Shown: positions 5,636 through 39,748 of the stretch, in pieces
Layout: the number at the start of each line of letters is the position of its first letter
How positions within the stretch are numbered: the stretch's first letter is position 1
Virus record (IMG/VR): IMGVR_UViG_3300030385_002649
Coordinates: 124,001 to 188,000 of that record
Direction: 5' to 3' (one strand)
DNA: 64,000 nt
Position numbers and translations under genes: made by a program
Notes under the pieces: model-generated
The model's input: only the letters and a program-made list of their open reading frames with translations
The model's database searches: none
What the model was told of the DNA's origin: nothing

Positions 5636-5904
5636 TATTTTACCTGGTCAATCTTATAATAATTAAACTGATATGCTGTTTTAATTCTATGGCAATTGGA
5701 ACAAAGTACATTATCATTTAAATAATTAACAATTTTTAATCTAGTCTTCTCTTTTCTTAATTTTCTATTAAGATTTTTAACTTTTAATTTATGCGTTCGA
5801 TTTTTAGCGTAATACTTTTTTTGATGTTCATTATAACAAATGCGACATTTGCCACTCTTAGACACATTATTGTTAATTACGCCACATTCGTTACAACTTT
5901 TCAT
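5635..5904 (-). pseudogene. Degenerate HNH endonuclease (Zn-finger N-terminus, catalytic core apparently deleted)
   Basis: CNEC/CRIC, basic helix, then YLNDN joined directly to VLCSNCHRIKTA; the usual CxxC...DFDH segment is absent; very AT-rich. Confidence 0.55.
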
Positions 5905-6529
5905 ATCTTTTTTCTACTGCCTCCCAATCAATGTCTCTTAATAAATTGTCGATATATTCTTGTTTATCACTTTTATAATCAATATAATATGAATGCTCGA
6001 ACATATCTAGCGCTAATATTGGGTACCACATAGGCGATTGATTGTTGTGAGAATCTACCAAACTAACATTAAGGCTGTTATCCAACAGGTCTAAACCGAC
6101 TATCGCCCACCCGCGAGATGCTATACAAGTCGCTTTTAAAATAGCGAAAAAATCTTCTTTAGATCTAAAAAATTTATTTATAATTTCTTCAAATTTTTTA
6201 GACATATCTTTTTTGCCCAAACAATCAAAATAAATTTCATGCAGCAACACTGCATTATAATTAAAATTGATGTCTAAACATGCACTTCGATATTCTCCAC
6301 CATTAGAATCAGCGTTAGCTACAGAAACAGAGTCTAGTTCTCTTTTAGCTTTCTTATAAGCATCTAGATATTCTTTGTAGTGCTTATCGTAATGTTCTGA
6401 CATCTGTTCTGGAGATAAGAAGCAATCGGGTTGCTTCGCAGCATTGTCTTCATCTTCCATGAGCATATCTAGTTGGAGTTCGATCTTATCTAGGAATTTT
6501 TTAGTGGGGTCGTAACGCATAGTGCTCAT
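5891..6529 (-). CDS. sod: Fe/Mn superoxide dismutase
   Basis: EHYDKHYKEY, NAVLLHEIYF, GWA, PILALDMFEHSYYIDY and IDWEAVEKRY motifs; all four metal ligands present. Confidence 0.93.
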   Translation of the reverse strand: MSTMRYDPTKKFLDKIELQLDMLMEDEDNAAKQPDCFLSPEQMSEHYDKHYKEYLDAYKKAKRELDSVSVANADSNGGEYRSACLDINFNYNAVLLHEIYFDCLGKKDMSKKFEEIINKFFRSKEDFFAILKATCIASRGWAIVGLDLLDNSLNVSLVDSHNNQSPMWYPILALDMFEHSYYIDYKSDKQEYIDNLLRDIDWEAVEKRYEKL

Positions 6530-6545
6530 ACCTTATATTTTCATG

Positions 6546-9158
6546 TTAAATTACAGCTAGTTTTCTAACCTTGGTGTTTTCGATGCGCCTAAGTAATGTC
6601 TTAATTACTTCATTAATCTGATTTACTGGAAGCATTTCTTTCATGCACTTGTGCTCATAAGGGCAAGGAGGTTTCTTATGAACCGCAATTTTGTTATCTT
6701 CACGATAACAAGGAGAGCATTCTAAACCAGCCCACATGTTTTCATGGTCTTCATACCCACTTCCATCTGGGCTAGTAGACCCAAATAGCACCACTGCTGG
6801 CACTTTGAGGGCATTAGCGGCATGCTGGAAAACACTGTCTAACCCAACGAATATCACCGATTGCCGCATGACTGCAAAAGACTCTCTCAAAGTCAATTTA
6901 CCCATCATATGGTGCGCACCAGGAATTTTAGTTTCCTCTTTAGCGCCCAACTGAATAAACTGATGACCTGGGAACAATTTGATCAGTTCTTTCCATTTTT
7001 CTAGAGGCCATTCCTTATATCTCGACCATCCAGTTCGAACGGCAAAAGTTATGATTGGCCTATCATACTCTAATGCTATCTGCCCATCCGTAGTGAGGTT
7101 TAACACGTTGCGCCAGTTTTTCGACAGTTTAACACCAGCACAGTCAGCAAAATAGTGCGCTAAATGCTTCTTCAGCGGCACATCAGGATATCCCTCCTGC
7201 ATTGGGTAATCGAAAGAGATCCTTTTATCAGCGTGCTTACCTGGTTCTGTGACGATTTCGTTAATATCCGGATTGCAGTCTAGAATCTGTTTCGAAGACG
7301 GGTGAGTAACATATCTTATGTGGGCCTTAGGATGCTTTTTTCGTAGTTCTCGGACCGCTGGTGTGGTACACAAGACATCACCAAGGGCTCCTTGCCTTGA
7401 AACTTCAATGACGAAGGTTTTATTGTTTAAGTGATCGATACGTTCTTGAGTAATCGCAAATCTCTTAGCAGTCTCGAAATCTCCCAAAGCCTCCCAGCAC
7501 AATGAAATCCAATGTTTTGGAACCGGGCCATACATCTCGTTACGAACGAACATGTCTGTCTTAGGCGGTTTCAAATTCATGGCGATGTTGAGGAAATTGA
7601 TCGCCTTATAATAATCCGCTAAATAATAATAGGACTCGCCTATGCAACAATATAGTTCTGCCCATCTATCGTCCATAGCCAACCCGGTATAGGCGGTCTT
7701 GATAGAGTTTTTCCAGTCGTTTTTGAGATAATAGCAGACGGACTTATAATAATGCGTTAACAATAATTCATCTTGAAAATTTCCGCCTGTAGCGATATAC
7801 CGGTTGTATGCTTGAATTGCCTCATTTGTTTTACCAGCCTCTCTATAAGCATTTCCAAGGTAGAAGATTGCTCTTTTGTTATTAGGCTCGTCTTTTGCCT
7901 CTTTTTCTAAAATCTTTAGATTGCGCTCGACCCGCCCTGGTTTATCCTGAGAAATATGGGTGACGTGAGCGTTTGGCATTACCCCCATCCTGCATTGATG
8001 AATTACTGGATATTCGTGAATCGCTCCTTTAAAATGGACACCCCAGCCATTTCTGAACATTCTAGCGTGCTGGAAACGCATGTCCCCATATTGTATCCCA
8101 ACGTGCCAGCCGTCTAAATCGGCGGGAAGGTCGAGCTTTTCTGGTCCCTCGAATCTATCGTCAGCGTCCATCCATATGACCCAATCACCTGTGGCTTTAG
8201 CTAACGATTCATTTCTGGCTTTAGCGAAGTGGAAGTCTTCAAATTCAGTAAACTCATCAAAATGATCGGAAACATAAACGTCAGCGCCTGCGGCAGTCGC
8301 TAGCTTAATAGTGTTGTCCGTTGAACCCGTATCCACGATTATGACTTCATTAGGATAGTTCTTAACAGTCGCCAAGCAATCTAGAATGTTCTTTTCTTCG
8401 TTTTTTACGATCATGCACAGGCTCACTGTTGGAGATCTCTTTTTGAAAACCCAGGAGGTCTGCCCGTAGCCCATTGCGTGTTCGTACCAGATTAAATGAA
8501 AACCAGCTTGGATGGCTGCATATTTTAGCGATTCTGTTCCGAAAATGTTCGGATGAATTTGAGCGTGCCCTTCGGTATGGTCTCGCTCTATTCCTGGAAC
8601 GTCTTTGTTGGGGGATCTTAAATAAAGAACTCCTTCCTCGGAAAGATTGTCATAGGCACGCTTAAGAGCGGTTATGGGATCCATAAAATGCTCAAAAGAG
8701 TGGATCATTGTTATAAGATCGACTCCGTCACCTTCAGCAAGATAATAGTCTTTCGAGTCATAATTTTCCCAGTCTTGAGAAAGAGTTTCAACTTCCAAGT
8801 CATTGTTAATGGCCCCGTCTTTAAAAGAACCGTCAATAGCTAAAGCGTCAACTCCGATTCTTGAAAAACAATGTGCTAAGTAAGGATATCCACAGCCAAT
8901 ATCAAATGAAGTTTTTGGCTGATATCGCTGGAAAATCCATGATGCTAAATAAGCGTTTGAATTTTTCTCTTGGTCACCCATTATAGCGCCTTCGAACCCA
9001 TTACAATCGCCCGTCAATGGGTTCATCCACACTTTGGACTCTGGTGGCTTAGGCTGATAAGTATGGTGGCATGTCAAACAATTGACATAGCTTTTATAAA
9101 CGTAGTTCTGGAAGTTTCCATCTCCACAAAGAGGGCATTTCCGCATATTCATCTCCAA
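6546..9158 (-). CDS. Multidomain class I SAM methyltransferase - GT2 glycosyltransferase - TPR - GT9 (heptosyltransferase-like) fusion
   Basis: CPLC/CLTC, DIGCG, HSFEH (MTase); SLCMIVKNEE, VDTGSTD, FAKARN, WMDADD, GAIHE (GT2); TPR helices; GALGDVLCTTPAVRELRK, KEWP, VGLDS, VVLFGST, CSPC (GT9). Confidence 0.9.
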   Translation of the reverse strand: MEMNMRKCPLCGDGNFQNYVYKSYVNCLTCHHTYQPKPPESKVWMNPLTGDCNGFEGAIMGDQEKNSNAYLASWIFQRYQPKTSFDIGCGYPYLAHCFSRIGVDALAIDGSFKDGAINNDLEVETLSQDWENYDSKDYYLAEGDGVDLITMIHSFEHFMDPITALKRAYDNLSEEGVLYLRSPNKDVPGIERDHTEGHAQIHPNIFGTESLKYAAIQAGFHLIWYEHAMGYGQTSWVFKKRSPTVSLCMIVKNEEKNILDCLATVKNYPNEVIIVDTGSTDNTIKLATAAGADVYVSDHFDEFTEFEDFHFAKARNESLAKATGDWVIWMDADDRFEGPEKLDLPADLDGWHVGIQYGDMRFQHARMFRNGWGVHFKGAIHEYPVIHQCRMGVMPNAHVTHISQDKPGRVERNLKILEKEAKDEPNNKRAIFYLGNAYREAGKTNEAIQAYNRYIATGGNFQDELLLTHYYKSVCYYLKNDWKNSIKTAYTGLAMDDRWAELYCCIGESYYYLADYYKAINFLNIAMNLKPPKTDMFVRNEMYGPVPKHWISLCWEALGDFETAKRFAITQERIDHLNNKTFVIEVSRQGALGDVLCTTPAVRELRKKHPKAHIRYVTHPSSKQILDCNPDINEIVTEPGKHADKRISFDYPMQEGYPDVPLKKHLAHYFADCAGVKLSKNWRNVLNLTTDGQIALEYDRPIITFAVRTGWSRYKEWPLEKWKELIKLFPGHQFIQLGAKEETKIPGAHHMMGKLTLRESFAVMRQSVIFVGLDSVFQHAANALKVPAVVLFGSTSPDGSGYEDHENMWAGLECSPCYREDNKIAVHKKPPCPYEHKCMKEMLPVNQINEVIKTLLRRIENTKVRKLAVI

Positions 9159-26894: not shown

Positions 26895-28544
26895 TTACTG
26901 TTGGGTTTGCGTATAAATGCTGTTCATAGCGCCCGCGAAGCGCAGCAAGTTCGCGCTCCAGCCTCCAAAGATGAAGGTCTTGTCGTAGAACTCAGGAACA
27001 ATGGTGTCACGGTATCCCGCGATTTGTACCAAGTAAACCATGACGTTCGGGTTGACCTTAGTACGGTAGTCCGCGATCAACTTTGGAACATCGACATATG
27101 CCATAGCGTGGTTCTTCTTGTTCATATAGGCGTAGTTTCCTAGGCCATTCTTGTTATAACCGTATAGCCCGCCATGACCGGCTTGCATGTCAGAGTAAAC
27201 GAACACGTGGTCCCAATGCTCCTTCTGCTTGATAGCCTTGTCCCAGAATACCCAAACGCCGTTCTCTGTGCCATTCCCGATTGTCCGAGCAGCTATTTCC
27301 GCTTCCTTTAGCTGATCGAAGATAGAAGAACGCTTACGGATTCTGTTTTCCTTCAACTTGTCACCGAAGACACCAAGGTAGCCCTCATCTGCCCTCATTC
27401 CAGTAATTACACCAGTAAGGTTTCCGATTGTAGAGATTTTCATCTCGCCAAGTTCAGAAGTAGAAGTGCCCTGAGCCGAGGCGCTGTTGTCACACAACGA
27501 CATAACACGACCCTTAAAGCGAGGCAAGTTGCCGAGCGATACGATCATGCATTCTTCGATAGCGTCAAGCAACGACGGATCCGCCATGTCCTGAATAGCC
27601 TTATAAGCGCTGTAATACCTGAAAGGAAGTTGCCTACCCTTGTCAGCGCCCTTTACCAACTTATCCTTATAAGTGTCCACAGAAACTCCATGCTTGATGA
27701 AGTTACGAAGGTTCCTAAGTAGAGCCATGTGACCCATAACCTTAGCCGACTCTTCCCAGGACTTCTGGTTAGAACCCTTTTCAGAAGTGATAGACTCCCA
27801 GGTCTTGCCAGTTGACTTCAAGTTACCCTTCATCAACTTATCGATAGCCTCGCTCTTAGCGTGCACCAAGTTGATGACGTCTACAGTCTTAACACCACGG
27901 TTTTCCAGGCGATACTTACCAAGTTGATACTCATCGTATCCTTCCAAAGAGTCCTTAAGAGCACGCTTCAAACGAGTAGGAATTGGCTTCCCAAAAGCAG
28001 ACAACTGATAAGCTAGACAGGTTGCCGGTTCATCCGCACGACGGATGATCTTCTTAGCATAAGCACGGATAAGGTTTGTTCCCTTAGAACCAGCATGGTT
28101 AGCTGCTCTAACTAGGATGACCTGAGGAGTAGCGCGAATGTTATCGCTGTTACGCAACGACACTGCTACTTGAAGAGTACGCTCAACATCAGCGTCTAGT
28201 GCCGAATCGATTACGCCCTCCATCAACTCCTTAGAAGTCTTGCCACGCCACTCTGGGGGATCGAGAGCCGTAAGAGAGCTACGAATGTGCTTAGCCTCTG
28301 CCGCTGCCAACGAGCTGATGCTAGTGTACTTCTGTCCGAAAGCGCCCACACTAGCTGCGGCCGCACGCTTGTTTCTTTTCTCGTCAGTTTCATGATAAAA
28401 CTTCGGCTCACCGAAGAAACACGAAGCCGCAGCGATGTGCAGACGGAGAAATGGATCATTGATGTCGTAAGATGGAGCACCCATTTCGTTCATATGCGCT
28501 CGTGCGCGGACCTTAGGCAGGGTCTTAGTGTTGATCTTGCTCAT
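26895..28544 (-). CDS. TROVE-domain (Ro60/Rsr, TEP1-like subgroup) RNA-binding protein with vWA domain
   Basis: NEMGAPSY, FFGEPKFY, IRRADE, DEYQLGKY, TWE, MGHMALLRNLRN, QLPFRYYSAY; vWA MIDAS-like DNSASA...T...SDMQ; strong RBS. Confidence 0.9.
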   Translation of the reverse strand: MSKINTKTLPKVRARAHMNEMGAPSYDINDPFLRLHIAAASCFFGEPKFYHETDEKRNKRAAAASVGAFGQKYTSISSLAAAEAKHIRSSLTALDPPEWRGKTSKELMEGVIDSALDADVERTLQVAVSLRNSDNIRATPQVILVRAANHAGSKGTNLIRAYAKKIIRRADEPATCLAYQLSAFGKPIPTRLKRALKDSLEGYDEYQLGKYRLENRGVKTVDVINLVHAKSEAIDKLMKGNLKSTGKTWESITSEKGSNQKSWEESAKVMGHMALLRNLRNFIKHGVSVDTYKDKLVKGADKGRQLPFRYYSAYKAIQDMADPSLLDAIEECMIVSLGNLPRFKGRVMSLCDNSASAQGTSTSELGEMKISTIGNLTGVITGMRADEGYLGVFGDKLKENRIRKRSSIFDQLKEAEIAARTIGNGTENGVWVFWDKAIKQKEHWDHVFVYSDMQAGHGGLYGYNKNGLGNYAYMNKKNHAMAYVDVPKLIADYRTKVNPNVMVYLVQIAGYRDTIVPEFYDKTFIFGGWSANLLRFAGAMNSIYTQTQQ

Positions 28545-29655: not shown

Positions 29656-30924
<1,269 letters not shown>

Positions 30925-30949: not shown

Positions 30950-31294
30950 TTAAATACGATTTGATAACAAAATTGCTTTACGAAACAATTTAATTAAAGG
31001 CTCATAAATCTTCAATCTCCTCTTAGCCTCGTTAAGTTTTGGGTCTTGCGCTTTTTTGACGCCTGCCATTCTATCGCTTTCGAATTTAACCAAAATTTGG
31101 CTACCTTCTTCATCCGTTTCTGCAGCTCTGACCAATTTAGCTAATTTAAGATGATTGCCAGTGCCACCAGTATCAAGATGCACAGCCTTTTGCGCATCGA
31201 CGAGCAATTCGCTGATCGTCTTATGCTTCAATTTATTTATCAATTTATTTATCAATTTGCCAATTTGTTTTTGTTTGCCACAACGACCTCGCAA
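30950..31294 (-). CDS. Hypothetical protein (true start probably near 31231)
   Basis: Annotated 5' end spans AAATTGATAAAT direct repeats that look non-coding. Confidence 0.45.
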   Translation of the reverse strand: MRGRCGKQKQIGKLINKLINKLKHKTISELLVDAQKAVHLDTGGTGNHLKLAKLVRAAETDEEGSQILVKFESDRMAGVKKAQDPKLNEAKRRLKIYEPLIKLFRKAILLSNRI

Positions 31295-31318: not shown

Positions 31319-33160
31319 CTAAGAACCGCGTTTAAACGTCAGGATTGGCTCATAAGTCTTATCTCGACCCATAAATGATGCAGTTTTCATCTCCAGCTTC
31401 TCAAATAATTCAAATCCATAATTTTTAGCAACTTCGACACACATATTTTCTTGTCTTCTAGGAAGATTTATGACGACAATTCCCTCAAATTTGTTAAAAA
31501 TATTTTCTAATATTGGTCTAGTTGTAGTCTTAAACGAATCGATGCCAGAATATAATTCACAATCGTCATAAGGGGGAGATGTAAACAGCAAATCCCCTTT
31601 TTCGAAGTCAACTTCCGAAGAGTCGGCCAAAGAAAATTTAGGCTCTATTTCCATCCTAGACCCTATGAATTTTCTTAACTTCTGGTGAGATTTTATAGAG
31701 TTTGGATTTAAATCATATCCGATATATTTGTATGTTGAGTCTAATGTGGCCAGTAGTCTTCCGCCCCAACCCATACACGGATCTACAATTGTTCCACCAT
31801 CGGGAAGATACCGCTCATAAATATATCGTGCTACCCATGGTTTAAAAATTGATACTACAGCAAAATCTTTATAATGCCTTTTAATTATGTCAACAAGTCC
31901 ATAAATATTAAAATTACGTTTCTGAACCCATAGTTTTTCAACAGCTGCCCTCAAAATCGAAAGATTTCCGTCTTCAAAAGTTTCTTTTATTGTGCAGTAT
32001 TTATTATGTGTAGAATCCCAGAAATGCTGGCTAAAGTGTTTTATCAGATCGACTGTGGATTTATTTGGGTGGTTTGCGTTTAGACTTTTACCAGGTTTCA
32101 TTACGTTATTCAAACCAAGAAGCAACTTGTCCTTGTGCCATTTTAATGGCTTAAACCCATAAGCCATTAAAAATTCAAAACAATCATTTGGATTATTAAA
32201 CACCAGTTTCCAGTTAAGACAAAAGTATCTGTCTTCATCGTTTAATGGTTCATATTCATAGTACTTTCCGCGATACCAACATCTTAAATCTATGCCATTC
32301 GCTTTAGCTATTAACCATTGTTTTATAAATCTTTGTCTGTTTATGCCGGGATTTCTAGCATATTCAGGTGGTTTGATCTCAACATAATTGCCATCAATTT
32401 TAAAATCGGGGACATATTCTGATCCACATGCTTCAAAAGTCACAGAGCCGTTTTCAACCGACGACACAGTCGTTGCGTCTAATGACATGACAAAATCATG
32501 TTCAGCCTGACTCTGAAGATTAAAAATCCCCCATTTTGTTTTTGCTTTTCTTCTAGTGGCTGTTTTTCTTCTCTGGTTCCTAAGATATACATCTTTAGAT
32601 TTCAAAGGAATGTCATGTCTTTTTAGATGATGAGAAATAGTTCCGACATTAGCACCAAGCATCCTAGATATTTCGCCCATTGATTTGTTTTTGTTTAAAT
32701 AATTTTCTTCTAGCCAAGATTTATCGTTTAGTTCAGCAATCTCAGACCCGCTAATAGCTCTGCGTTTTTCGTCGGTCCATGCCTTTTTCATTTTTAGGCT
32801 TTGAATTTCGGAAAACAATTCTCTATTTAGCTCAATATTGTGCTTAATACAAGTTCTTTGTACTGAACCGCGCGACCCGTCTACTTCACTAGCTATCTGA
32901 TCTAAAGTGTGGGTGTTTCGCATTTCTCGAATTTTACTTATCGTCCTTGGATTGTCAAGTTTGCTTTTGTTTTTTATTTTACCAGCCTGTTTATGAGTTC
33001 TTTTTAGGCCCAAATAATTGAACAATTTCATCATAGTCCTGCGAGGAACGTCAAATTTTTTAGCTATTTCAGCTTGCGTTAAATTCTGTTCAAAAAGTTT
33101 AACAACTTCTTCTTTTTGTTCTTGAGTAAATCTGTCTTGCGCTGGGATGGGCTTAACCAT
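31319..33160 (-). CDS. Fusion of multiple HTH domains, PD-(D/E)XK (TnsA-like) endonuclease and amino-DNA methyltransferase
   Basis: HTHs (TQAEIAKKF, TLDQIASEV, SMGEISRML); S..E...YVPDFKIDGNYVEIKP; FKPWVA, DPCMGWGGRL, YIGYDLN, FTSPPY; AT-rich. Confidence 0.8.
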   Translation of the reverse strand: MVKPIPAQDRFTQEQKEEVVKLFEQNLTQAEIAKKFDVPRRTMMKLFNYLGLKRTHKQAGKIKNKSKLDNPRTISKIREMRNTHTLDQIASEVDGSRGSVQRTCIKHNIELNRELFSEIQSLKMKKAWTDEKRRAISGSEIAELNDKSWLEENYLNKNKSMGEISRMLGANVGTISHHLKRHDIPLKSKDVYLRNQRRKTATRRKAKTKWGIFNLQSQAEHDFVMSLDATTVSSVENGSVTFEACGSEYVPDFKIDGNYVEIKPPEYARNPGINRQRFIKQWLIAKANGIDLRCWYRGKYYEYEPLNDEDRYFCLNWKLVFNNPNDCFEFLMAYGFKPLKWHKDKLLLGLNNVMKPGKSLNANHPNKSTVDLIKHFSQHFWDSTHNKYCTIKETFEDGNLSILRAAVEKLWVQKRNFNIYGLVDIIKRHYKDFAVVSIFKPWVARYIYERYLPDGGTIVDPCMGWGGRLLATLDSTYKYIGYDLNPNSIKSHQKLRKFIGSRMEIEPKFSLADSSEVDFEKGDLLFTSPPYDDCELYSGIDSFKTTTRPILENIFNKFEGIVVINLPRRQENMCVEVAKNYGFELFEKLEMKTASFMGRDKTYEPILTFKRGS

Positions 33161-33215
33161 GACTCATATCTCCTTAAAAATATTTAGTATATATCGCGTC
33201 ACTTTATATACATTG

Positions 33216-33244
33216 AAAAACCCGGTCCATTAAGACCGGGTTTT
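33216..33244 (-). terminator. Rho-independent terminator after the major capsid gene
   Basis: AAAACCCGGTC-loop-GACCGGGTTTT with a U tract. Confidence 0.9.
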
Positions 33245-33268
33245 CCTTAGTGTTTCAGCTATGACCTG

Positions 33269-34804
33269 TTATAGGTTCGAAACTGTAACGACACCGTAGT
33301 AGAGGCCACCGTCTTCGATCAGCTTTTTACCATAACGAGTCATGATTCCCTTGTTCGGGGTGAACGAGTTAGGATCTAGTACGGTTGGTGTGCTGAGAAG
33401 TGGGATGTATGGAGCGTAGAAGTAACCACTGTCTAGGACACTGTTACCCTTGAAGCCCATGAGGATCTTGCAGTTAGGGAAGAGTGGATCCTTGTAGAGC
33501 TTGAGCTTTCCTTGGATCGTTCCTGCGGTGGTGATTCCGACGTCGATTCCGTCTTGTGCGAGGGCGTCTGAACCACGGAAGTCGTTCAGTTGCTCGAACT
33601 TGGAGGCGATATCAGCACTTGTAACCATCCAGTTAGCTGGGCCACGGAGGGTCAAGCGGTGGATGACGTTTGCAACTTCAAGAGTCTTGTAGAGCAAAGC
33701 GATGTTACGGTCGGTGAAGTTGACGGATGCACCTGCGCCTGTGGCGAAGTTGTGCGTCGCGCGGACTGCGGAAGCGATGATGAGGTCGTTGATGATCTCA
33801 CGGTCGATTTCTGCAACCATTTCGTCAGCCATAAGATCCGTTAGCGTCGACTCGGCGTCGATGTTGTGGACGGACTTGAGGTCCTGAGCAGCTTCAAGGG
33901 ACCAAGAGGTCTTGAGCTTACGAGTGATAGCGGCAACCGAATCACTGTCGATGCTGAGGGTCACTTCTGGCTGGAACGGGTTGTTCTCAAGGTCGAACTC
34001 GTAATCAGCTCTAGCTATAGCGCCCGCTGGGAGCACGCCTGCTGCTAGAGTGATGGTCACAGTACCGGTCGAGTGATCGAACTGTGTAGCACCAGTCGTG
34101 CTGTCGTCAACTGCGACACCCGTTGCATCACCGACTAGGATGAGGTCTGGGTTTCCGTCGCTGTCGAAACCAACTTGGAGAATTGGCGTTGGATCTTCGC
34201 AGGTGTCAACATCTTCACGGAAGACGTTGACTACAACCGTACCAGCGAGAACTGGGCGGTGTGCGAGGGTTCCGCTGACAACCGTTCCGGTTCCGTCAAC
34301 TGTTAGGTCTTCACCCTTGACCTCTTGCGAGGAGTAATAAGGATCAAGTGCCCAACCGTTTTGGCGAGCAAACTGCTGTGCAGTGTTCTGACGCATGATT
34401 TGCGTACCGGCAACTGTTTGGCCCTTAGAAAGAGCGTAACGGTACCTGATGTAGAAAATCAAGCTGGCAGGCTGACTCATTGGCTGAACACCAACGAGGT
34501 TGTCAGCAATTAGCTTCGGATAACTCTTACGAATAAGAGGCAACGCGAATCTGGTGAAGTCAGCGATGTCGCCGGTTGTGGTTGAATCCTCAAGAAGTAC
34601 GCTGCGTCCCTTTGGGTCCCAGTGGTTCAACTGGTTCTCTAGAATTGCGGACATTAGGCCGAATTTTTGAGATGGGATTTCCTTGCATTTCTTAAGAACT
34701 GGCGACCACTTGCGGATCATCTGGTTCTTCTTAGATTCGCGAATCAGTGTTTGTTCGCGAAGCTTGCTAGCTTCAGCTAGCATTTGGTTTTGGGAAAAAT
34801 TCAT
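33269..34804 (-). CDS. gp23: Major capsid protein, T4 gp23-like
   Basis: KWSPVL, ILENQ, LVGVQPMSQP..LIF, RKLKTSWSLEAAQDL..H.IDAE, EIDREII, GYFYAPYIPL, DPNSFTP.KGIMTRYG. Confidence 0.97.
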   Translation of the reverse strand: MNFSQNQMLAEASKLREQTLIRESKKNQMIRKWSPVLKKCKEIPSQKFGLMSAILENQLNHWDPKGRSVLLEDSTTTGDIADFTRFALPLIRKSYPKLIADNLVGVQPMSQPASLIFYIRYRYALSKGQTVAGTQIMRQNTAQQFARQNGWALDPYYSSQEVKGEDLTVDGTGTVVSGTLAHRPVLAGTVVVNVFREDVDTCEDPTPILQVGFDSDGNPDLILVGDATGVAVDDSTTGATQFDHSTGTVTITLAAGVLPAGAIARADYEFDLENNPFQPEVTLSIDSDSVAAITRKLKTSWSLEAAQDLKSVHNIDAESTLTDLMADEMVAEIDREIINDLIIASAVRATHNFATGAGASVNFTDRNIALLYKTLEVANVIHRLTLRGPANWMVTSADIASKFEQLNDFRGSDALAQDGIDVGITTAGTIQGKLKLYKDPLFPNCKILMGFKGNSVLDSGYFYAPYIPLLSTPTVLDPNSFTPNKGIMTRYGKKLIEDGGLYYGVVTVSNL

Positions 34805-34821
34805 TGTTTTTTAAGCCTTTC

Positions 34822-35577
34822 TTAGTCTTCCATAGAGGCGGCAATGTTGGAAATGTGCTTACTTCCAGGTTTGGCATTGCTCTTGCCTCTACGTTGCGAT
34901 TCGTCAAGAACGCGTCTTGTCGAACTAGGTTGGTTTGGAACTCGCCTGTTCTCGTCCAGTCTTGGACGGGATCGACGTGGTTTCTTGCTGGACTCAGCAA
35001 GAACGGTCCTGGTCGAAGGTTTTTTGTTCTTTGGTGCAGAAGGACCACCCTTCTTGGATTCACTAACAACATTAGATTTCTTGACTTTTCCTTCAAGTAA
35101 TCTATTCTTCTTTAGGACGTCCTTAGCGATTTGATTGGCTTTGTTAGCCTTTGTAACCGCTAAGTTACGCTCTTCTCTGAGAGAACCAACAGCTTGCTGC
35201 AACCTCGCAACTTGACGACGAGCGACCTGGAGATCCTGACTTTGTCCGTCTTCAATCTGTACTCCTTCTAAGAGAGCTTTAGTTCTCTTCAGGAGATTGA
35301 CGGACTCAGATTCTTCATTTAGCCTCTGCTTTTCAGCTGCCCTCTCGAAATGATCAGTTTTAGATTCTAGGTAGATGGACAGTTTCCTGGCCATCTTAGC
35401 TTTTTCCTTATTAACTTCTTCAAGGCAAATAGCCCTAGCTTTTCTGACGTGTTTATCTAACTTGACTTTGTACTGTTCCCTAATGGTGTCAGCATACGCA
35501 GCAAATTCTTCTGCGATAGCCTCGATTAGGTCTTCGCTTCCGCCAAGCTCTTTAAGCAATCCTCGTAGCTTATCCAT
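34822..35577 (-). CDS. gp22: Prohead core scaffold protein, gp22-like
   Basis: Coiled coil between protease and capsid genes; multiple L/V-x-E-S cleavage-like sites. Confidence 0.7.
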   Translation of the reverse strand: MDKLRGLLKELGGSEDLIEAIAEEFAAYADTIREQYKVKLDKHVRKARAICLEEVNKEKAKMARKLSIYLESKTDHFERAAEKQRLNEESESVNLLKRTKALLEGVQIEDGQSQDLQVARRQVARLQQAVGSLREERNLAVTKANKANQIAKDVLKKNRLLEGKVKKSNVVSESKKGGPSAPKNKKPSTRTVLAESSKKPRRSRPRLDENRRVPNQPSSTRRVLDESQRRGKSNAKPGSKHISNIAASMED

Positions 35578-36427: not shown

Positions 36428-39400
36428 TCAGCCCTCGCTAGCAATTTCCTCTTCGGCTGACTCTTCGTCTGATTCGAAGTCACTTGACTCTTCTTCATCA
36501 TCGTCGCCGTCGCCGTCGCCTGCGAAAGGATTATCAGATTCTTCTCCAAGACCTAAACCGGAATCTAATTCGCCTTCGAAGTCTTCTTCGTTCTCAGGCT
36601 CTTCCATTCCCATTTCTAGGTCATCGTCATCGCCCATTTCAAGGCCAGCGTCCATGCTGTCTTCCTCAGGCTCCAACATGCCCTCGTCAGTTTCTAGCTC
36701 TGGTGGAGACATGTCGTCCATGTCTCCGCCGCCGCCGCCATTTAGAACGCTGTCTACCGCTGAGGCAACATCCCCTGAATCACCCTTAAAGACTACGGCT
36801 GTAACGTCTTCGGCAATTGTATCAGCAATTCGCTGCATCGACTCCATTGGATTAACAGAAGACTTCTTTAACCCACTCTTTTTCATCGATGCGCTTTTGT
36901 ATTGATCTTCAGACTTAGCGAATGGGTTTCCGCCGCCGTCATCGTCCCCGCCATCAGGCTTGCAACTGCAGTCATCACACCCTGGGGCGCACTTGCAGGC
37001 AGCATCCTCATCATCGCAGCAAGAACAGGATTTAGATGACTTGTCGTCGCTATCTCCGTCCTTCTTCTTGTCCTTAATGAAATCTGGGAGCTCGCCTTCT
37101 TCGAGAGCTTCCCATTCAGCAATCATAGACGCAATATTTTCAGGTGTCAGAGATTCTGCGACCCCGCCAGACCCTTGAAGATCTGCCATTTCGCCATTTT
37201 TACCGGCTTTCTTGAGGCCGCCATCGGAGCCAACTTTGCCTTGGCCCTTTGTTCCGTCACTGTCACAACCGTCATCCTCAACGCCTTCGCGTCCTTGGAA
37301 TTCGCTCATATCAAGCCCAGCGTCTGAAGGCCCACCGGAAGCTGTGTATTTCTTAGCTCCGCTGGCTCCGTCTCCGCTAGCGCCATCTGCCTTGTGAGGA
37401 GCATATTTCTTTTCAACTCCACCACGGCCTTGGAAGTCGCCTCCCATGCTGGTTCCAGTTGAGGAGAAACCACCCTTAGCTAGGGCTGGATCGCCACCGG
37501 CCTTAGGTTTTACGCTGCTCTCGGAAGGAGTAGCCGATTGACCAACTTTCCCTTTTCTTCCGTCAGAACTGCTTAGTGACTTAGACTGAACGCCTCCAGC
37601 GCCTTGCTGATCGTCCATTCTGAGGTCGCCACCGGCTGAGCCAGATGTGCTGTGCTCACCTTTACGTCCGTCAGCGCTCTTTAGGCTCTTGCTTTGTATT
37701 CCTGAGCCGCGCTGTGGTGCGTGTTGTCCAGCGGCACTTCCACCGGCACTACGACCATCAGACTTGCGAGCGCTCTTGTCCGAGATTCCGCCGCTTCCAC
37801 GAATGTCATCCATTCTTAGAGCGTCTGGCGAAGCGTGCATGTCTCCACCTGGCACGTGTGCCTGGGAGTATGGTTGTTCTGATTCTAGGTAAGTGTGACG
37901 ATAGCCAGGATTGATTCTACCGCTTTGAGGTTTCTTACCTTCTAGGAAAGCTGGATCGCTGCTTGGGTCACGACGGTTTCTGCTAGTAAGGTTCGAGTCT
38001 GGACCATTAAAGGCAGCACTAACGCTGTTGGAGTAAGGGTCGCTGTCGCCTTGCACGTCTTCTAGAATGTCGCCACCTGTCACCATTCGGTCGCGCATTC
38101 CTTCGAATGATTCACGAACAATGTTAGTGCTTGGTCCTAGCTCGATACAGCGCTTGATGTAACCTTCCATTTGGGCGTAACAGTCATCATAACCGTCTTC
38201 GCTCAAGTAGGCATCACCGTTTAACCTCCAAGACTCTAGTTCTTCTAGAAGATCGGAGGTACTCATCTCGTCAATTCTGACGCCGCCTGGTGTTGGGGCG
38301 CTTTCAGGCATTCCCATTCCACCCATTTCTGGGCCACCGGCTCCTGCCATCGCCATGTCGTCGCCCATTCCTAGGTCGTCGCCTTGGCCAACTTCAGGAA
38401 GAGACATTAACTCAGAGCCAGCGCCATCGCCGCTCTGGTCGTCATAAGTCTCAACTCCTGGTTCCATATCGAAGTTCGATAGGTTGTCAATGTTGTTAGT
38501 CAGGTTGTCGTTGATTGTGTGGAAGATCTCTTCCGCTTGGATTAGCGAGTAAGAGTCTGGTTCCGTGCGGGACAGCTTGTCGATGATATCGCCGAGCTTG
38601 TCCTTAGCAATGACGGAGTCGTCACTGTCTTCTTGATCTGGGAGCCTATCTTGGATATATTCTAGAGCCAACTTGTACATCGAGGCAACGGTGTTGTTGC
38701 GATCTTCACTGAAAACGTGGCCTAGGAACTTGTGATAATCTTGCTCGAAATCGTCAGATTCTGCGAGCAGGTTAGCCTTAGACATGAGGTCGGCGCTTTG
38801 GGAACGCTGTGCTGTCTTAGTCCAGGATTCAATGATGTCTTGTCTGTTATACTTGGCGTTTACCTTATACATCAACTTGGAGACGTCGCTGGTCAACATG
38901 CTGTTGAACTCACCTCTAGTTGCTAGAGTGTTTTCAACAAGTTGCCTCATATAATTCTTGTCTAGAAGGGAGAATTCTTGTTCTTCCTTGAAGAACTTAG
39001 CTGTTAGTTTGCAGGCGTCAGCGATTCTTCCTTCACAAACGAGGGAGGCCGTTTCTACAACCAGGCTTTGGAAAGGAGTGCTAGCGTAAGCTTCGCTCGC
39101 AATGTCGCGCATCTTGCGAGCGATCAGTTTTCTTTTTGTGCTTTCGTTTACTGGCAGTTTGAAGTCAGGGTCCTCCTTGAACAGCGTGCCTTCAACGATT
39201 CGGCCATTTTGAACAACAATGTTGTCGCTGACAGCTTCGCAAAACAAGTTTGAGATAGTTGCGACAACGTCTTCATCCATCTTTCTAGATGCAATATTAA
39301 CTTGTCTTGAGACACCGTCTTTTGCGGTGATCCATCCGCTGCTTGGGACGACACTTGAACGATAACGTTGGCCTTCGATTCGGCTAAACGTCTTGTCCGC

Positions 39401-39748
39401 ACCCTTGTAGTCACCTAAACAGATGTTCTCAACTAGATCCAAAAGGTTCTTTTTGAATTGTGTAGCTTTTTCCTCTTCAATAACCTGAATGGGACTAACG
39501 TTCTCAATTTTAACTCTTCCTTTACCAACCTGCTTGACATCAGCACGGTAATAAATCCCAGAGTCCACATCCTCATACATGAGGTGGTTTGTTTGTAGAG
39601 ATGTAAGTCTTAGATTCTGGCCAGCTTCTTTGCCAAGGCGAGAAACAGCCTCTTCAAAGTACCTGAGAGTAGCAGCCGCACCATTGTTGATCTCGCGCAC
39701 GAACTTACGTGCGTCCATAACGATTGGGGCCTTGTTATTTTGAGCCAT
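36428..39748 (-). CDS. Large acidic prohead/internal head protein (1106 aa)
   Basis: Between portal and protease; helical N-half, disordered G/S/D/E-rich C-half, many xxE-S sites; CAAAAATA upstream. Confidence 0.6.
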   Translation of the reverse strand: MAQNNKAPIVMDARKFVREINNGAAATLRYFEEAVSRLGKEAGQNLRLTSLQTNHLMYEDVDSGIYYRADVKQVGKGRVKIENVSPIQVIEEEKATQFKKNLLDLVENICLGDYKGADKTFSRIEGQRYRSSVVPSSGWITAKDGVSRQVNIASRKMDEDVVATISNLFCEAVSDNIVVQNGRIVEGTLFKEDPDFKLPVNESTKRKLIARKMRDIASEAYASTPFQSLVVETASLVCEGRIADACKLTAKFFKEEQEFSLLDKNYMRQLVENTLATRGEFNSMLTSDVSKLMYKVNAKYNRQDIIESWTKTAQRSQSADLMSKANLLAESDDFEQDYHKFLGHVFSEDRNNTVASMYKLALEYIQDRLPDQEDSDDSVIAKDKLGDIIDKLSRTEPDSYSLIQAEEIFHTINDNLTNNIDNLSNFDMEPGVETYDDQSGDGAGSELMSLPEVGQGDDLGMGDDMAMAGAGGPEMGGMGMPESAPTPGGVRIDEMSTSDLLEELESWRLNGDAYLSEDGYDDCYAQMEGYIKRCIELGPSTNIVRESFEGMRDRMVTGGDILEDVQGDSDPYSNSVSAAFNGPDSNLTSRNRRDPSSDPAFLEGKKPQSGRINPGYRHTYLESEQPYSQAHVPGGDMHASPDALRMDDIRGSGGISDKSARKSDGRSAGGSAAGQHAPQRGSGIQSKSLKSADGRKGEHSTSGSAGGDLRMDDQQGAGGVQSKSLSSSDGRKGKVGQSATPSESSVKPKAGGDPALAKGGFSSTGTSMGGDFQGRGGVEKKYAPHKADGASGDGASGAKKYTASGGPSDAGLDMSEFQGREGVEDDGCDSDGTKGQGKVGSDGGLKKAGKNGEMADLQGSGGVAESLTPENIASMIAEWEALEEGELPDFIKDKKKDGDSDDKSSKSCSCCDDEDAACKCAPGCDDCSCKPDGGDDDGGGNPFAKSEDQYKSASMKKSGLKKSSVNPMESMQRIADTIAEDVTAVVFKGDSGDVASAVDSVLNGGGGGDMDDMSPPELETDEGMLEPEEDSMDAGLEMGDDDDLEMGMEEPENEEDFEGELDSGLGLGEESDNPFAGDGDGDDDEEESSDFESDEESAEEEIASEG

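Follow-up and report, generated by a model that had tools for sequence, protein, structure and literature searches.

The giant T4-like phage genome represented by IMG/VR record IMGVR_UViG_3300030385_002649 carries, just after its capsid gene gp23, an AT-rich, apparently mobile gene whose product joins HTH DNA-binding modules, a predicted DNA-cutting domain and a predicted DNA-methylating domain in one protein. This protein probably cuts rival DNA while marking its own as safe, which would link homing endonucleases to restriction-modification (R-M) systems. We analyzed a stretch of 64,000 nucleotides of this record (positions 124,001 to 188,000; hereafter the window, to which all coordinates refer). 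The gene is a single ORF of 613 aa at exactly 31319..33160 on the minus strand (P0001), with a GC content of 35.7% in a 370.8-kb genome of 45.4% GC; among ORFs of 150 aa or more, whose genome mean is 45.8%, it is the 5th lowest of 256 (z = -2.2). The original prediction, made from the sequence alone, described three HTH modules, a TnsA-like PD-(D/E)XK core and a complete amino-methyltransferase in one AT-rich ORF after the gp23 terminator, and this observation is confirmed.

The gene upstream on the same strand is gp23 (33269..34804, minus; Pfam Gp23, E 7e-79; phrog_138), the conserved left neighbor of the cassette. Its stop codon (33269-33271) is followed by a hairpin terminator at 33217..33244 (11-bp stem with six G-C pairs, flanked by A and T runs), a TATATAAA box, an AAGGAG ribosome-binding site and the ATG. 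Every related locus has a hairpin at this point, with a different sequence in each. The leader of the cassette (33161..33216, minus) comprises the GTATATAAA box (33203-33211), which resembles a T4 late promoter although promoter function is only inferred, a conserved TGACGCGATAT block (33191-33201), and the ribosome-binding site (33170-33175). The TGACnnGATAT block recurs upstream of the family members at two related loci (L002 and L011; L-numbers here denote the loci of relatives), and in looser form upstream of the Mom-type cassettes at L033, L062 and L075.

Pfam, NCBIfam and single-sequence PDB searches with the whole protein recognized only the HTH parts, and family profiles and structure models were needed for the remainder. 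Pfam itself recognizes neither the nuclease nor the methyltransferase, the best hit being Methyltransf_15 with E 0.088. The AlphaFold2 model (mean pLDDT 93.3, pTM 0.74) shows four parts. The first (aa 1-199; 32564..33160, minus) contains three tri-helical HTH modules plus linker helices, with matches to Pfam HTH_38, Sigma70_r4 and HTH_23. The first module (aa 12-44) and the third in order along the chain (aa 153-182) pass Pfam's own cut-offs, whereas the remaining one (aa 71-106) is a three-helix unit in the model with only a weak NCBIfam hit. PHROG families annotated as 'HNH endonuclease' match only this HTH part, and aa 1-135 are shared with HTH-nuclease-Mom proteins. Across the family three to six HTH modules are present and vary in number.

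The second part (aa 200-305; 32246..32563, minus) is a predicted TnsA/Bax1-like PD-(D/E)XK nuclease domain. Its YVPDF motif holds D252 and its VEIKP motif holds E261 and K263; together with E220 these residues are invariant in 57 homologues and align to the corresponding motifs of Bax1, which is hit in a profile search with E 3e-4. The domain model (pLDDT 92.5) matches the TnsA catalytic domain at Z 8.6, with an rmsd of 2.7 A over 100 of 113 residues, and shows the alpha-beta-beta-beta-alpha-beta core fold; the next hit scores 6.5, and Vsr, I-Bth0305I, VRR_NUC, Bax1 and Hjc follow TnsA in the ranking. Phage 'Endonuclease I', NUMOD3 and 'putative homing endonuclease' proteins are also matched in BFVD.

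The third part (aa 306-440; 31841..32245, minus) is a conserved helical adaptor that always travels with the methyltransferase. It is conserved in all family members, including the LAGLIDADG-fused and nuclease-less ones, and it may be the DNA-recognition part. The fourth (aa 441-613; 31322..31840, minus) is a class I Rossmann amino-methyltransferase domain with DPCMGWGGR as motif I (460-468), D483 as motif II, D513 as motif III and TSPPY as motif IV (527-531), all invariant or nearly so in 62 homologues. The SPPY form is typical of N4-cytosine enzymes. The fold is matched at Z 14-17; however, the nearest solved structures are tRNA/rRNA m2G and m6A enzymes, and the assignment as a DNA methylase rests on weaker evidence, namely hits of the PADLOC mad2 and Type II MTase models, profile hits, and the alignment of the adaptor and Rossmann domain together to AFDB clusters automatically named 'cytosine-N(4)-specific DNA-methyltransferase'. 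P0001 has no hit to Pfam N6_N4_Mtase (PF01555): relatives score just under the cut-off, and the two halves of the profile match in swapped order. It is a permuted, divergent relative and not a PF01555 member.

The protein belongs to a sizeable family of 42 clusters (50% identity) at E<1e-30. Every member found by protein similarity whose context could be read lies downstream of gp23, in uncultured T4-like jumbo phages: this covers L002, L003 and L088-L091, as well as the HTH-sharing Mom fusions at L095-L098. The slot is a hotspot. Of 46 distinct relatives, eight loci carry only this family and three more carry it together with other classes; five carry only LAGLIDADG- or HNH/EndoVII-methylase fusions; four carry only nuclease-Mom fusions; nine carry a lone HNH/EndoVII gene; and 14 carry none of these classes. 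On a gp23 tree of 45 relatives the slot states require 20 changes, against a mean of 21.3 for shuffled labels, and very close pairs differ, for example L033 (Mom) versus L070, and L081 versus L066. DNA homology between loci with different occupants stops within 0-4 nt of the gp23 stop, whereas the window and L011 remain homologous through the whole cassette before homology stops. All four nuclease-modifier ORFs of this genome rank among its eight lowest-GC ORFs. On a tree of the methylase module the nuclease is lost or swapped repeatedly while the methylase is always kept, an asymmetry that R-M logic predicts, although some of the 'nuclease-less' members may be fragments from short contigs.

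The best explanation, to which we give a probability of about 0.55, is that the ORF is the cargo of a mobile, selfish cassette occupying a hypervariable slot that begins at the gp23 stop codon in an uncultured clade of T4-like jumbo phages. In this view the protein is a single-chain 'cut and protect' enzyme, part homing endonuclease and part R-M system: HTH modules of the kind used by phage homing endonucleases would bind DNA, the TnsA-like domain would cleave DNA lacking the modification, and the fused methyltransferase would use SAM to methylate the same sites in the carrier genome, most likely at N4-cytosine judging by the SPPY motif. In mixed infections the nuclease would break the DNA of related phages lacking the cassette, probably in or near the conserved 3' part of gp23, and recombinational repair would then copy gp23-linked DNA and the cassette into the rival genome (homing and marker exclusion). 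Our analysis itself establishes the architecture, the intact catalytic motifs, the AT-rich foreign composition, the address behind gp23, the patchy distribution and the interchange with other nuclease-plus-modifier fusions, whereas metal-dependent DNA cleavage, DNA methylation and the base modified, the coupling of the two activities, and the location and length of the target, be it one long site near gp23 or many short sites, are inferred without biochemical evidence of any kind.

Certain observations weigh against this scenario. No rise in gp23 similarity toward the cassette was seen among carriers (the window against L011, L007-L012, L002, L042 and L064), although at about 25% DNA divergence this comparison has little power. 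The right flank of the cassette shares no homology between carriers, so that a simple two-armed homing event is not documented, and a fixed address could also arise from vertical descent with frequent loss and replacement in a plastic region. The original prediction had proposed a selfish endonuclease carrying its own protective methylase, or a phage-versus-phage exclusion system, and this interpretation is partly supported: comparative evidence supports a selfish, mobile nuclease gene that travels with a DNA modifier, while cleavage and protection of the same sites remain inferences. Of the two findings that had been named as fatal to it, neither an inactivated nuclease nor a universally conserved ordinary orphan methylase is indicated, as the catalytic residues are invariant and the gene is patchy. 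Its premise that free-standing homing endonucleases sit beside conserved genes such as gp23 also holds, since T4 itself has segD between genes 23 and 24 (PMC2988022). The element is, however, less singular than initially thought, given its family and the parallel fusions considered next.

The closest precedent is the fusion of a restriction-endonuclease-fold nuclease to Mom in jumbo phages, already read as restriction plus protective modification (Iyer et al., 2021, Viruses 13:63; PMC7824862). This genome carries three such ORFs as separate genes, beside which no conserved core gene was recognized, and Mom fusions in relatives share aa 1-135 of P0001 and the slot behind gp23. P0001 is an analogue and not a member of this group: it has no hit to Mom (PF25680), its modifier is a SAM-dependent amino-methyltransferase in place of the Mom GNAT enzyme, and its nuclease is TnsA/Bax1-like and not MTES_1575/Vsr-like. 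The address behind gp23 and the cassette turnover were not found in the passages of that study that we retrieved. Likewise, literature searches found no description of HTH-PD-(D/E)XK-methylase or LAGLIDADG/HNH-methylase fusions, nor of the gp23 slot, which does not prove that none exists.

The free-standing seg and mob homing endonuclease genes of T4-like phages (Edgell et al., 2010; PMC2988022) are similarly AT-rich, sporadically distributed nuclease genes with modular DNA-binding domains wedged beside a conserved essential gene, and segD occupies the same slot; in P0001 the nuclease fold is PD-(D/E)XK rather than GIY-YIG or HNH, and a predicted DNA methyltransferase is covalently attached. 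Single-chain Type IIG/IIC R-M enzymes (BpuSI, MmeI, Eco57I) likewise combine an N-terminal PD-(D/E)XK nuclease, a helical linker and an amino-methyltransferase, but P0001 ends about 80 aa after motif IV without a C-terminal target-recognition domain, DNA binding appears delegated to the N-terminal HTH array, the gene is a phage-encoded mobile cassette, and BpuSI is only a low-ranking structural hit (Z 3.7 for the nuclease). TnsA of Tn7 and the archaeal Bax1 nuclease share the E...D...(E/Q)xK layout, but the similarity is at the level of the fold family only (about 12-20% identity), and no XPB helicase partner was found beside the gene. The PD-(D/E)XK homing endonucleases I-Bth0305I and I-Ssp6803I also join this catalytic fold to separate DNA-binding modules in phage mobile elements, and the I-Bth0305I catalytic domain is a structural hit (Z 5.2), but they are intron- or intein-associated and carry no methylase, and I-Bth0305I is Vsr-like rather than TnsA-like. 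Stand-alone phage methylases, such as NVP2058O_092 of Vibrio phage 2.058.O (annotated 'N-4 cytosine-specific DNA methylase') and those of Twort-like Staphylococcus phages, show about 28-31% identity over the helical-plus-Rossmann unit with the same motif order, but are orphan enzymes of roughly 330 aa at unrelated loci, with neither HTH array nor nuclease.

A more far-reaching version of the main reading, which we regard as tentative, is a homing endonuclease with epigenetic self-immunity. The HTH array would act as an 'address label' for a long site in or beside the 3' end of gp23, the nuclease would cut that site in cassette-free phages, and the methylase would mark the very same site in the carrier. 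The label (aa 1-135) would be portable, being shared with nuclease-Mom cassettes at the same address, with four nuclease folds and two modifier chemistries recombined on it. The family would then be a living intermediate between homing endonucleases and R-M systems, an idea raised on theoretical grounds by Dunin-Horkawicz et al., 2006 (PMC1564403). Free-standing homing endonucleases must avoid cutting their own genome, and the known ones do so through sequence differences at the target; an attached methylase would be a different and general solution, allowing a target inside an essential gene that cannot mutate. As the slot pairs four nuclease folds (TnsA-like, Vsr-like, LAGLIDADG, HNH/EndoVII) with two modifiers (methylase, Mom) or with none, it offers a natural combinatorial experiment that makes the old question of the relationship between homing endonucleases and R-M systems directly testable. 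HTH-addressed nuclease-methylase pairs could also yield rare-cutting enzymes with matched protecting methylases.

The strongest alternative, possible but less likely, is a general single-chain R-M weapon, which would recognize short, frequent sites, methylate the whole phage genome and degrade host or superinfecting-phage DNA, with the position behind gp23 reflecting a plastic 'moron' slot and not site-specific homing. It is favored by the published reading of the Mom fusions, by the fact that no Dam, Dcm or PF01555-type methylase was found elsewhere in the genome, so that this could be the phage's only methylase, by the stand-alone orphan nature of the closest cultured-phage methylases, and by the lack of observed co-conversion tracts. 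Against it, the protein has a multi-HTH array of the homing-endonuclease type rather than a target-recognition domain, every recovered family member sits behind gp23 whereas fusions with other N-termini sit elsewhere in the genome, the N-terminal HTH module is shared between methylase- and Mom-type cassettes at this address, and the slot also hosts a lone HNH gene and, in T4, segD.

An unlikely alternative is that the methylase is an ordinary anti-restriction gene parasitized by HTH-nuclease or LAGLIDADG homing modules fused in frame to its 5' end, which would target nuclease-free methylase alleles without being held off by the methylase. The methylase is indeed the constant module and the nuclease the variable one, nuclease-free versions exist, and in-frame homing insertions in phage methylase genes are documented, as with ShiLan/HNH in actinophages (PMC11855218). 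There, however, the nuclease is an internal parasite, whereas here it is N-terminal, and the pairing recurs with the unrelated modifier Mom and with at least four nuclease folds, which points to functional coupling. Moreover, nuclease-bearing forms dominate (58 of 75), nuclease-free forms are scattered tips, and many relatives have no methylase gene in the slot at all.

An RNA-directed enzyme modifying tRNA or rRNA (m2G or m6A type), with the nuclease and HTH parts serving another role, is very unlikely. The top solved-structure matches are Trm14, aTrm11, TrmN, METTL5, RsmC and TGS1, and the collinear profile hits are also to RNA m2G enzymes, but these matches reflect the shared collinear Rossmann core; sequence profiles match the halves of DNA N4/N6 methylases in permuted order, the PADLOC and AFDB matches favor a DNA methylase, and the domain is fused to a predicted DNA nuclease and HTH modules, with the parallel proteins carrying Mom, a DNA modifier. 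A remnant of a Tn7-like transposon, suggested by the TnsA match and by hits of Pfam Tn7_TnsA-like_N to relatives at L072 and L078, is rejected as the 370.8-kb genome has no rve/TnsB-type transposase, the protein lacks the TnsA C-terminal domain, and the cassette is a single gene without terminal repeats at a fixed address.

Directly downstream of the cassette lies an AT-rich (37% GC) ORFan of 114 aa (30950..31294, minus), which has no Pfam or PHROG hit and no homologue outside this genome; homology with L011 ends before it. It may be a passenger of the cassette or a separate insertion. Two HTH-array-plus-nuclease proteins without a methylase (P0156 and P0092) were also recovered, on contigs too short to provide context. 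In a search of reads and contigs only the source marine sample contained the sequence, and only as contigs, among which no presence/absence joints were seen; the one finding was a low-depth relative that diverges at the gp23 stop.

The gene at window 31319..33160 on the minus strand is a single open frame encoding a protein of 613 aa (hereafter P0001). Its GC content is 35.7%, as against 45.4% for the 370,804-bp phage genome, which has direct terminal repeats; among the 256 ORFs of at least 150 aa it is the fifth lowest (z = -2.2). The gene upstream on the same strand is the T4-type major capsid gene gp23 (33269..34804; Pfam Gp23 E 7e-79), which is itself preceded by a scaffold-like gene and the gp21 prohead protease. 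Directly upstream of the protease gene lies an extremely acidic, low-complexity protein of 1106 aa (36428-39748, minus strand), which, from its position, may be a giant scaffold or internal head protein. The gp23 stop is followed, in order, by a hairpin terminator (33217-33244), a GTATATAAA box, a conserved TGACGCGATAT block, an AAGGAG ribosome-binding site and the ATG. The original prediction of three HTH modules, a TnsA-like PD-(D/E)XK core and a complete amino-methyltransferase in one AT-rich ORF after the gp23 terminator is correct in both its coordinates and its motifs.

An AlphaFold2 model built on 64 homologues is confident (mean pLDDT 93.3, pTM 0.74) and shows four parts: three tri-helical HTH modules (aa 1-199), an α/β nuclease domain (aa 200-305), a helical domain (aa 306-440) and a Rossmann domain (aa 441-613). 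Of the HTH modules, the first and third pass the Pfam thresholds, and PHROG families annotated as ‘HNH endonuclease’ match only this HTH part of the protein; hence, these are DNA-binding modules of the kind that phage homing endonucleases use. In the nuclease domain, E220, D252, E261 and K263 are invariant in 57 sequences, and a family profile recovers the archaeal nuclease Bax1 (E 3e-4). When folded alone (pLDDT 92.5), this domain matches the TnsA catalytic domain with Z 8.6 and an rmsd of 2.7 Å over 100 of 113 residues, clearly above the next hit at 6.5; Vsr, the I-Bth0305I homing endonuclease, VRR_NUC, Bax1 and Hjc follow. Its neighbors in the viral structure library are phage proteins named Endonuclease I, NUMOD3, ‘putative homing endonuclease’ and head-completion nuclease.

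In the methyltransferase, motif I (DPCMGWGGR), D483, D513 and motif IV (TSPPY) are invariant or nearly so in 62 sequences. The nearest solved structures are collinear RNA amino-methyltransferases, namely Trm14, aTrm11, TrmN, METTL5 and RsmC, at Z 15-17. Several lines of evidence nevertheless point to DNA as the substrate: sequence profiles match the two halves of DNA N4/N6 methylases in swapped order; PADLOC models for Type II methylases and mad2 return hits; the helical-plus-Rossmann unit matches AlphaFold DB clusters automatically named cytosine-N4 DNA methyltransferase; and the closest relatives from cultured phages are orphan methylases of roughly 330 aa, one of which is annotated as N4-cytosine specific. 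We therefore interpret it as a permuted DNA amino-methyltransferase, probably acting on N4-cytosine because of the SPPY signature, with the DNA substrate being an inference from these relationships. It has no target-recognition domain of its own.

An exhaustive search recovered 42 representative clusters at E<1e-30, with the full-length relatives being 40-72% identical. The C-terminal 300 aa, comprising the helical domain and the methylase, form the constant core of the family, whereas the N-terminus is modular: the number of HTH modules varies, and the PD-(D/E)XK block is replaced by a LAGLIDADG domain in a few members and is missing in others. On a tree of the methylase module, 58 of 75 members carry the PD-(D/E)XK block, four LAGLIDADG forms fall in one or two nested clades, and 13 nuclease-free forms, some of which may be fragments, are scattered tips. 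So the methylase is never lost, while the nuclease is lost or swapped: this is the asymmetry expected if the nuclease is dangerous without the methylase.

Proteins sharing aa 1-135 of P0001 continue into a different PD-(D/E)XK nuclease (MTES_1575) and the DNA modifier Mom, and a LAGLIDADG-Mom fusion is also found at one related locus (L091). The genome carrying P0001 (G000) has three further AT-rich (35-37% GC) single-chain genes outside the window, at 32218-33885 (minus strand), 203126-204580 (plus strand) and 291482-292834 (minus strand), which combine Zn-ribbon-like CxxC repeats, an MTES_1575/Vsr-like nuclease and a Mom domain. PHROG assigns them to ‘homing endonuclease’ and ‘Mom-like’ families, and they are not next to gp23. 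All four nuclease-modifier genes rank among the eight lowest-GC ORFs of the genome. The lowest GC content (34%) among its ORFs of at least 150 aa belongs to a 212-aa ORF at window 5891-6529 (minus strand), which may be another foreign or selfish insertion. Directly beside one nuclease-Mom ORF lies a 375-aa adenylosuccinate-synthetase homolog (G000 33937-35064, plus strand; 6937-8061 of the retrieved locus L092) that matches PHROG 1211, ‘2-aminooxy adenylosuccinate synthetase’ (PurZ type), at E 9e-64. The phage may replace adenine with 2-aminoadenine, which would change which restriction and modification enzymes can act on its DNA. A phage-encoded adenosine deaminase (G000 295870-296883, plus strand; Pfam A_deaminase E 3e-70), which lies near one nuclease-Mom ORF, may be linked to the purine-replacement pathway suggested by the PurZ-like gene.

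Every relative that was found by protein similarity and whose context could be read lies downstream of gp23. This holds for the related loci L002, L003, L088, L089 (where the gene caller had missed gp23), L090 and L091, and also for the HTH-sharing Mom fusions in L095-L098. We then started independently from gp23 and retrieved 80 related loci (gp23 75-90% identical), of which 46 are distinct and have at least 2.2 kb of downstream sequence. The first 2.7 kb after gp23 in these 46 loci hold the following: the cluster with the P0001 family and its TnsA-like_N relatives alone in eight; LAGLIDADG- or HNH/EndoVII-methylase fusions, with a distant methylase, alone in five; nuclease-Mom fusions alone in four; combinations of these classes in six, three of which include the first class; a lone HNH/EndoVII-type gene in nine; and none of these classes in 14. 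A recurrent cluster of ORFs of 190-390 aa sits right after gp23 in 17 loci (among them L008, L012, L013, L019, L024, L035, L053, L059, L070 and L084), and the one member scanned (L008, 263 aa) matches the PHROG endonuclease VII and HNH families. So many apparently empty slots may in fact hold a plain free-standing homing endonuclease gene.

On the gp23 tree these states need 20 changes, against a mean of 21.3 for shuffled labels; they are therefore as scattered as chance, and very close gp23 pairs differ in state. DNA homology between loci with different occupants ends within 0-4 nt of the gp23 stop, whereas the window and the related locus L011 (cassette 72% identical) stay homologous through the cassette and diverge right after it. 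In the source sample, low-depth contigs of a related phage (about 88% identical; runs X1 and X2) match the 3' end of gp23 (window 33269-33388) and diverge exactly at the stop codon, with a loose end resembling the cassette-free type seen in the related loci L046 and L083; carriers and non-carriers may therefore co-occur in one sample. T4 itself has the free-standing homing endonuclease gene segD between genes 23 and 24 (PMC2988022). The structural-gene block of this clade holds several kinds of selfish element: in a related jumbo phage (L003:1-468 and L004, a 332-kb contig) the portal gene carries Intein_splicing and LAGLIDADG_3 hits, and a Mom-containing ORF of 486 aa is wedged right after the prohead protease gene. 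The phage clade is uncultured: the best GenBank capsid match is 40%, to a 595-kb metagenomic phage, and cyanophages reach about 30%.

The analysis shows the architecture, the intact active sites, the foreign composition, the fixed address, the patchy distribution and the exchange of modules. In contrast, it is by inference that we propose that the nuclease cuts DNA lacking the mark, that the methylase marks the carrier genome, and that double-strand-break repair in mixed infections spreads the cassette along with linked gp23 sequence. Three observations count against this model: no co-conversion signal was seen in gp23 between carriers, in a test that has little power at their DNA divergence of about 25%, the right flank is not shared, and the neighbors among solved structures are RNA enzymes. 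The 3' third of gp23 holds the most nucleotide-conserved 30-mers of the gene; long conserved candidate targets therefore exist next to the slot, although none has been identified as the target.

An alternative is that P0001 is a general restriction weapon recognizing short sites, which is the published interpretation of the REase-Mom fusions (PMC7824862). This fits the absence of any other Dam, Dcm or PF01555 methylase in the genome, but it explains less well the HTH arrays and the single-address rule. That it is a homing element parasitizing an orphan methylase gene, as with the ShiLan insertion (PMC11855218), is unlikely because the same pairing recurs with Mom and with four nuclease folds. 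An RNA-methylase and a Tn7-derived element, for which no rve gene was found in the genome, both rank low.

Single-chain nuclease-modifier fusions are already known in the form of the Type IIG/IIC enzymes and the REase-Mom fusions of jumbo phages. Our literature searches found no description of the HTH-TnsA-like-methylase family, of its LAGLIDADG and HNH counterparts, or of the cassette hotspot at the gp23 stop codon. Dunin-Horkawicz et al. (PMC1564403) speculated that homing endonucleases and restriction-modification systems are two versions of one strategy, and this family looks like the intermediate between them.

Two further genes of the window encode proteins of other kinds. The first (29656-30924, minus strand) codes for a 422-aa protein with a signal-peptide-like start, a collagen triple-helix repeat (Pfam Collagen E 3e-8) and a C-terminal run of about 45 aspartates, which on the opposite strand reads as a long (ATC/GTC)n-like repeat ORF. 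The second (26895-28544, minus strand) codes for a 549-aa TROVE/Ro60-like RNA-binding protein (Pfam TROVE E 3e-13; phrog_850 E 3e-38).
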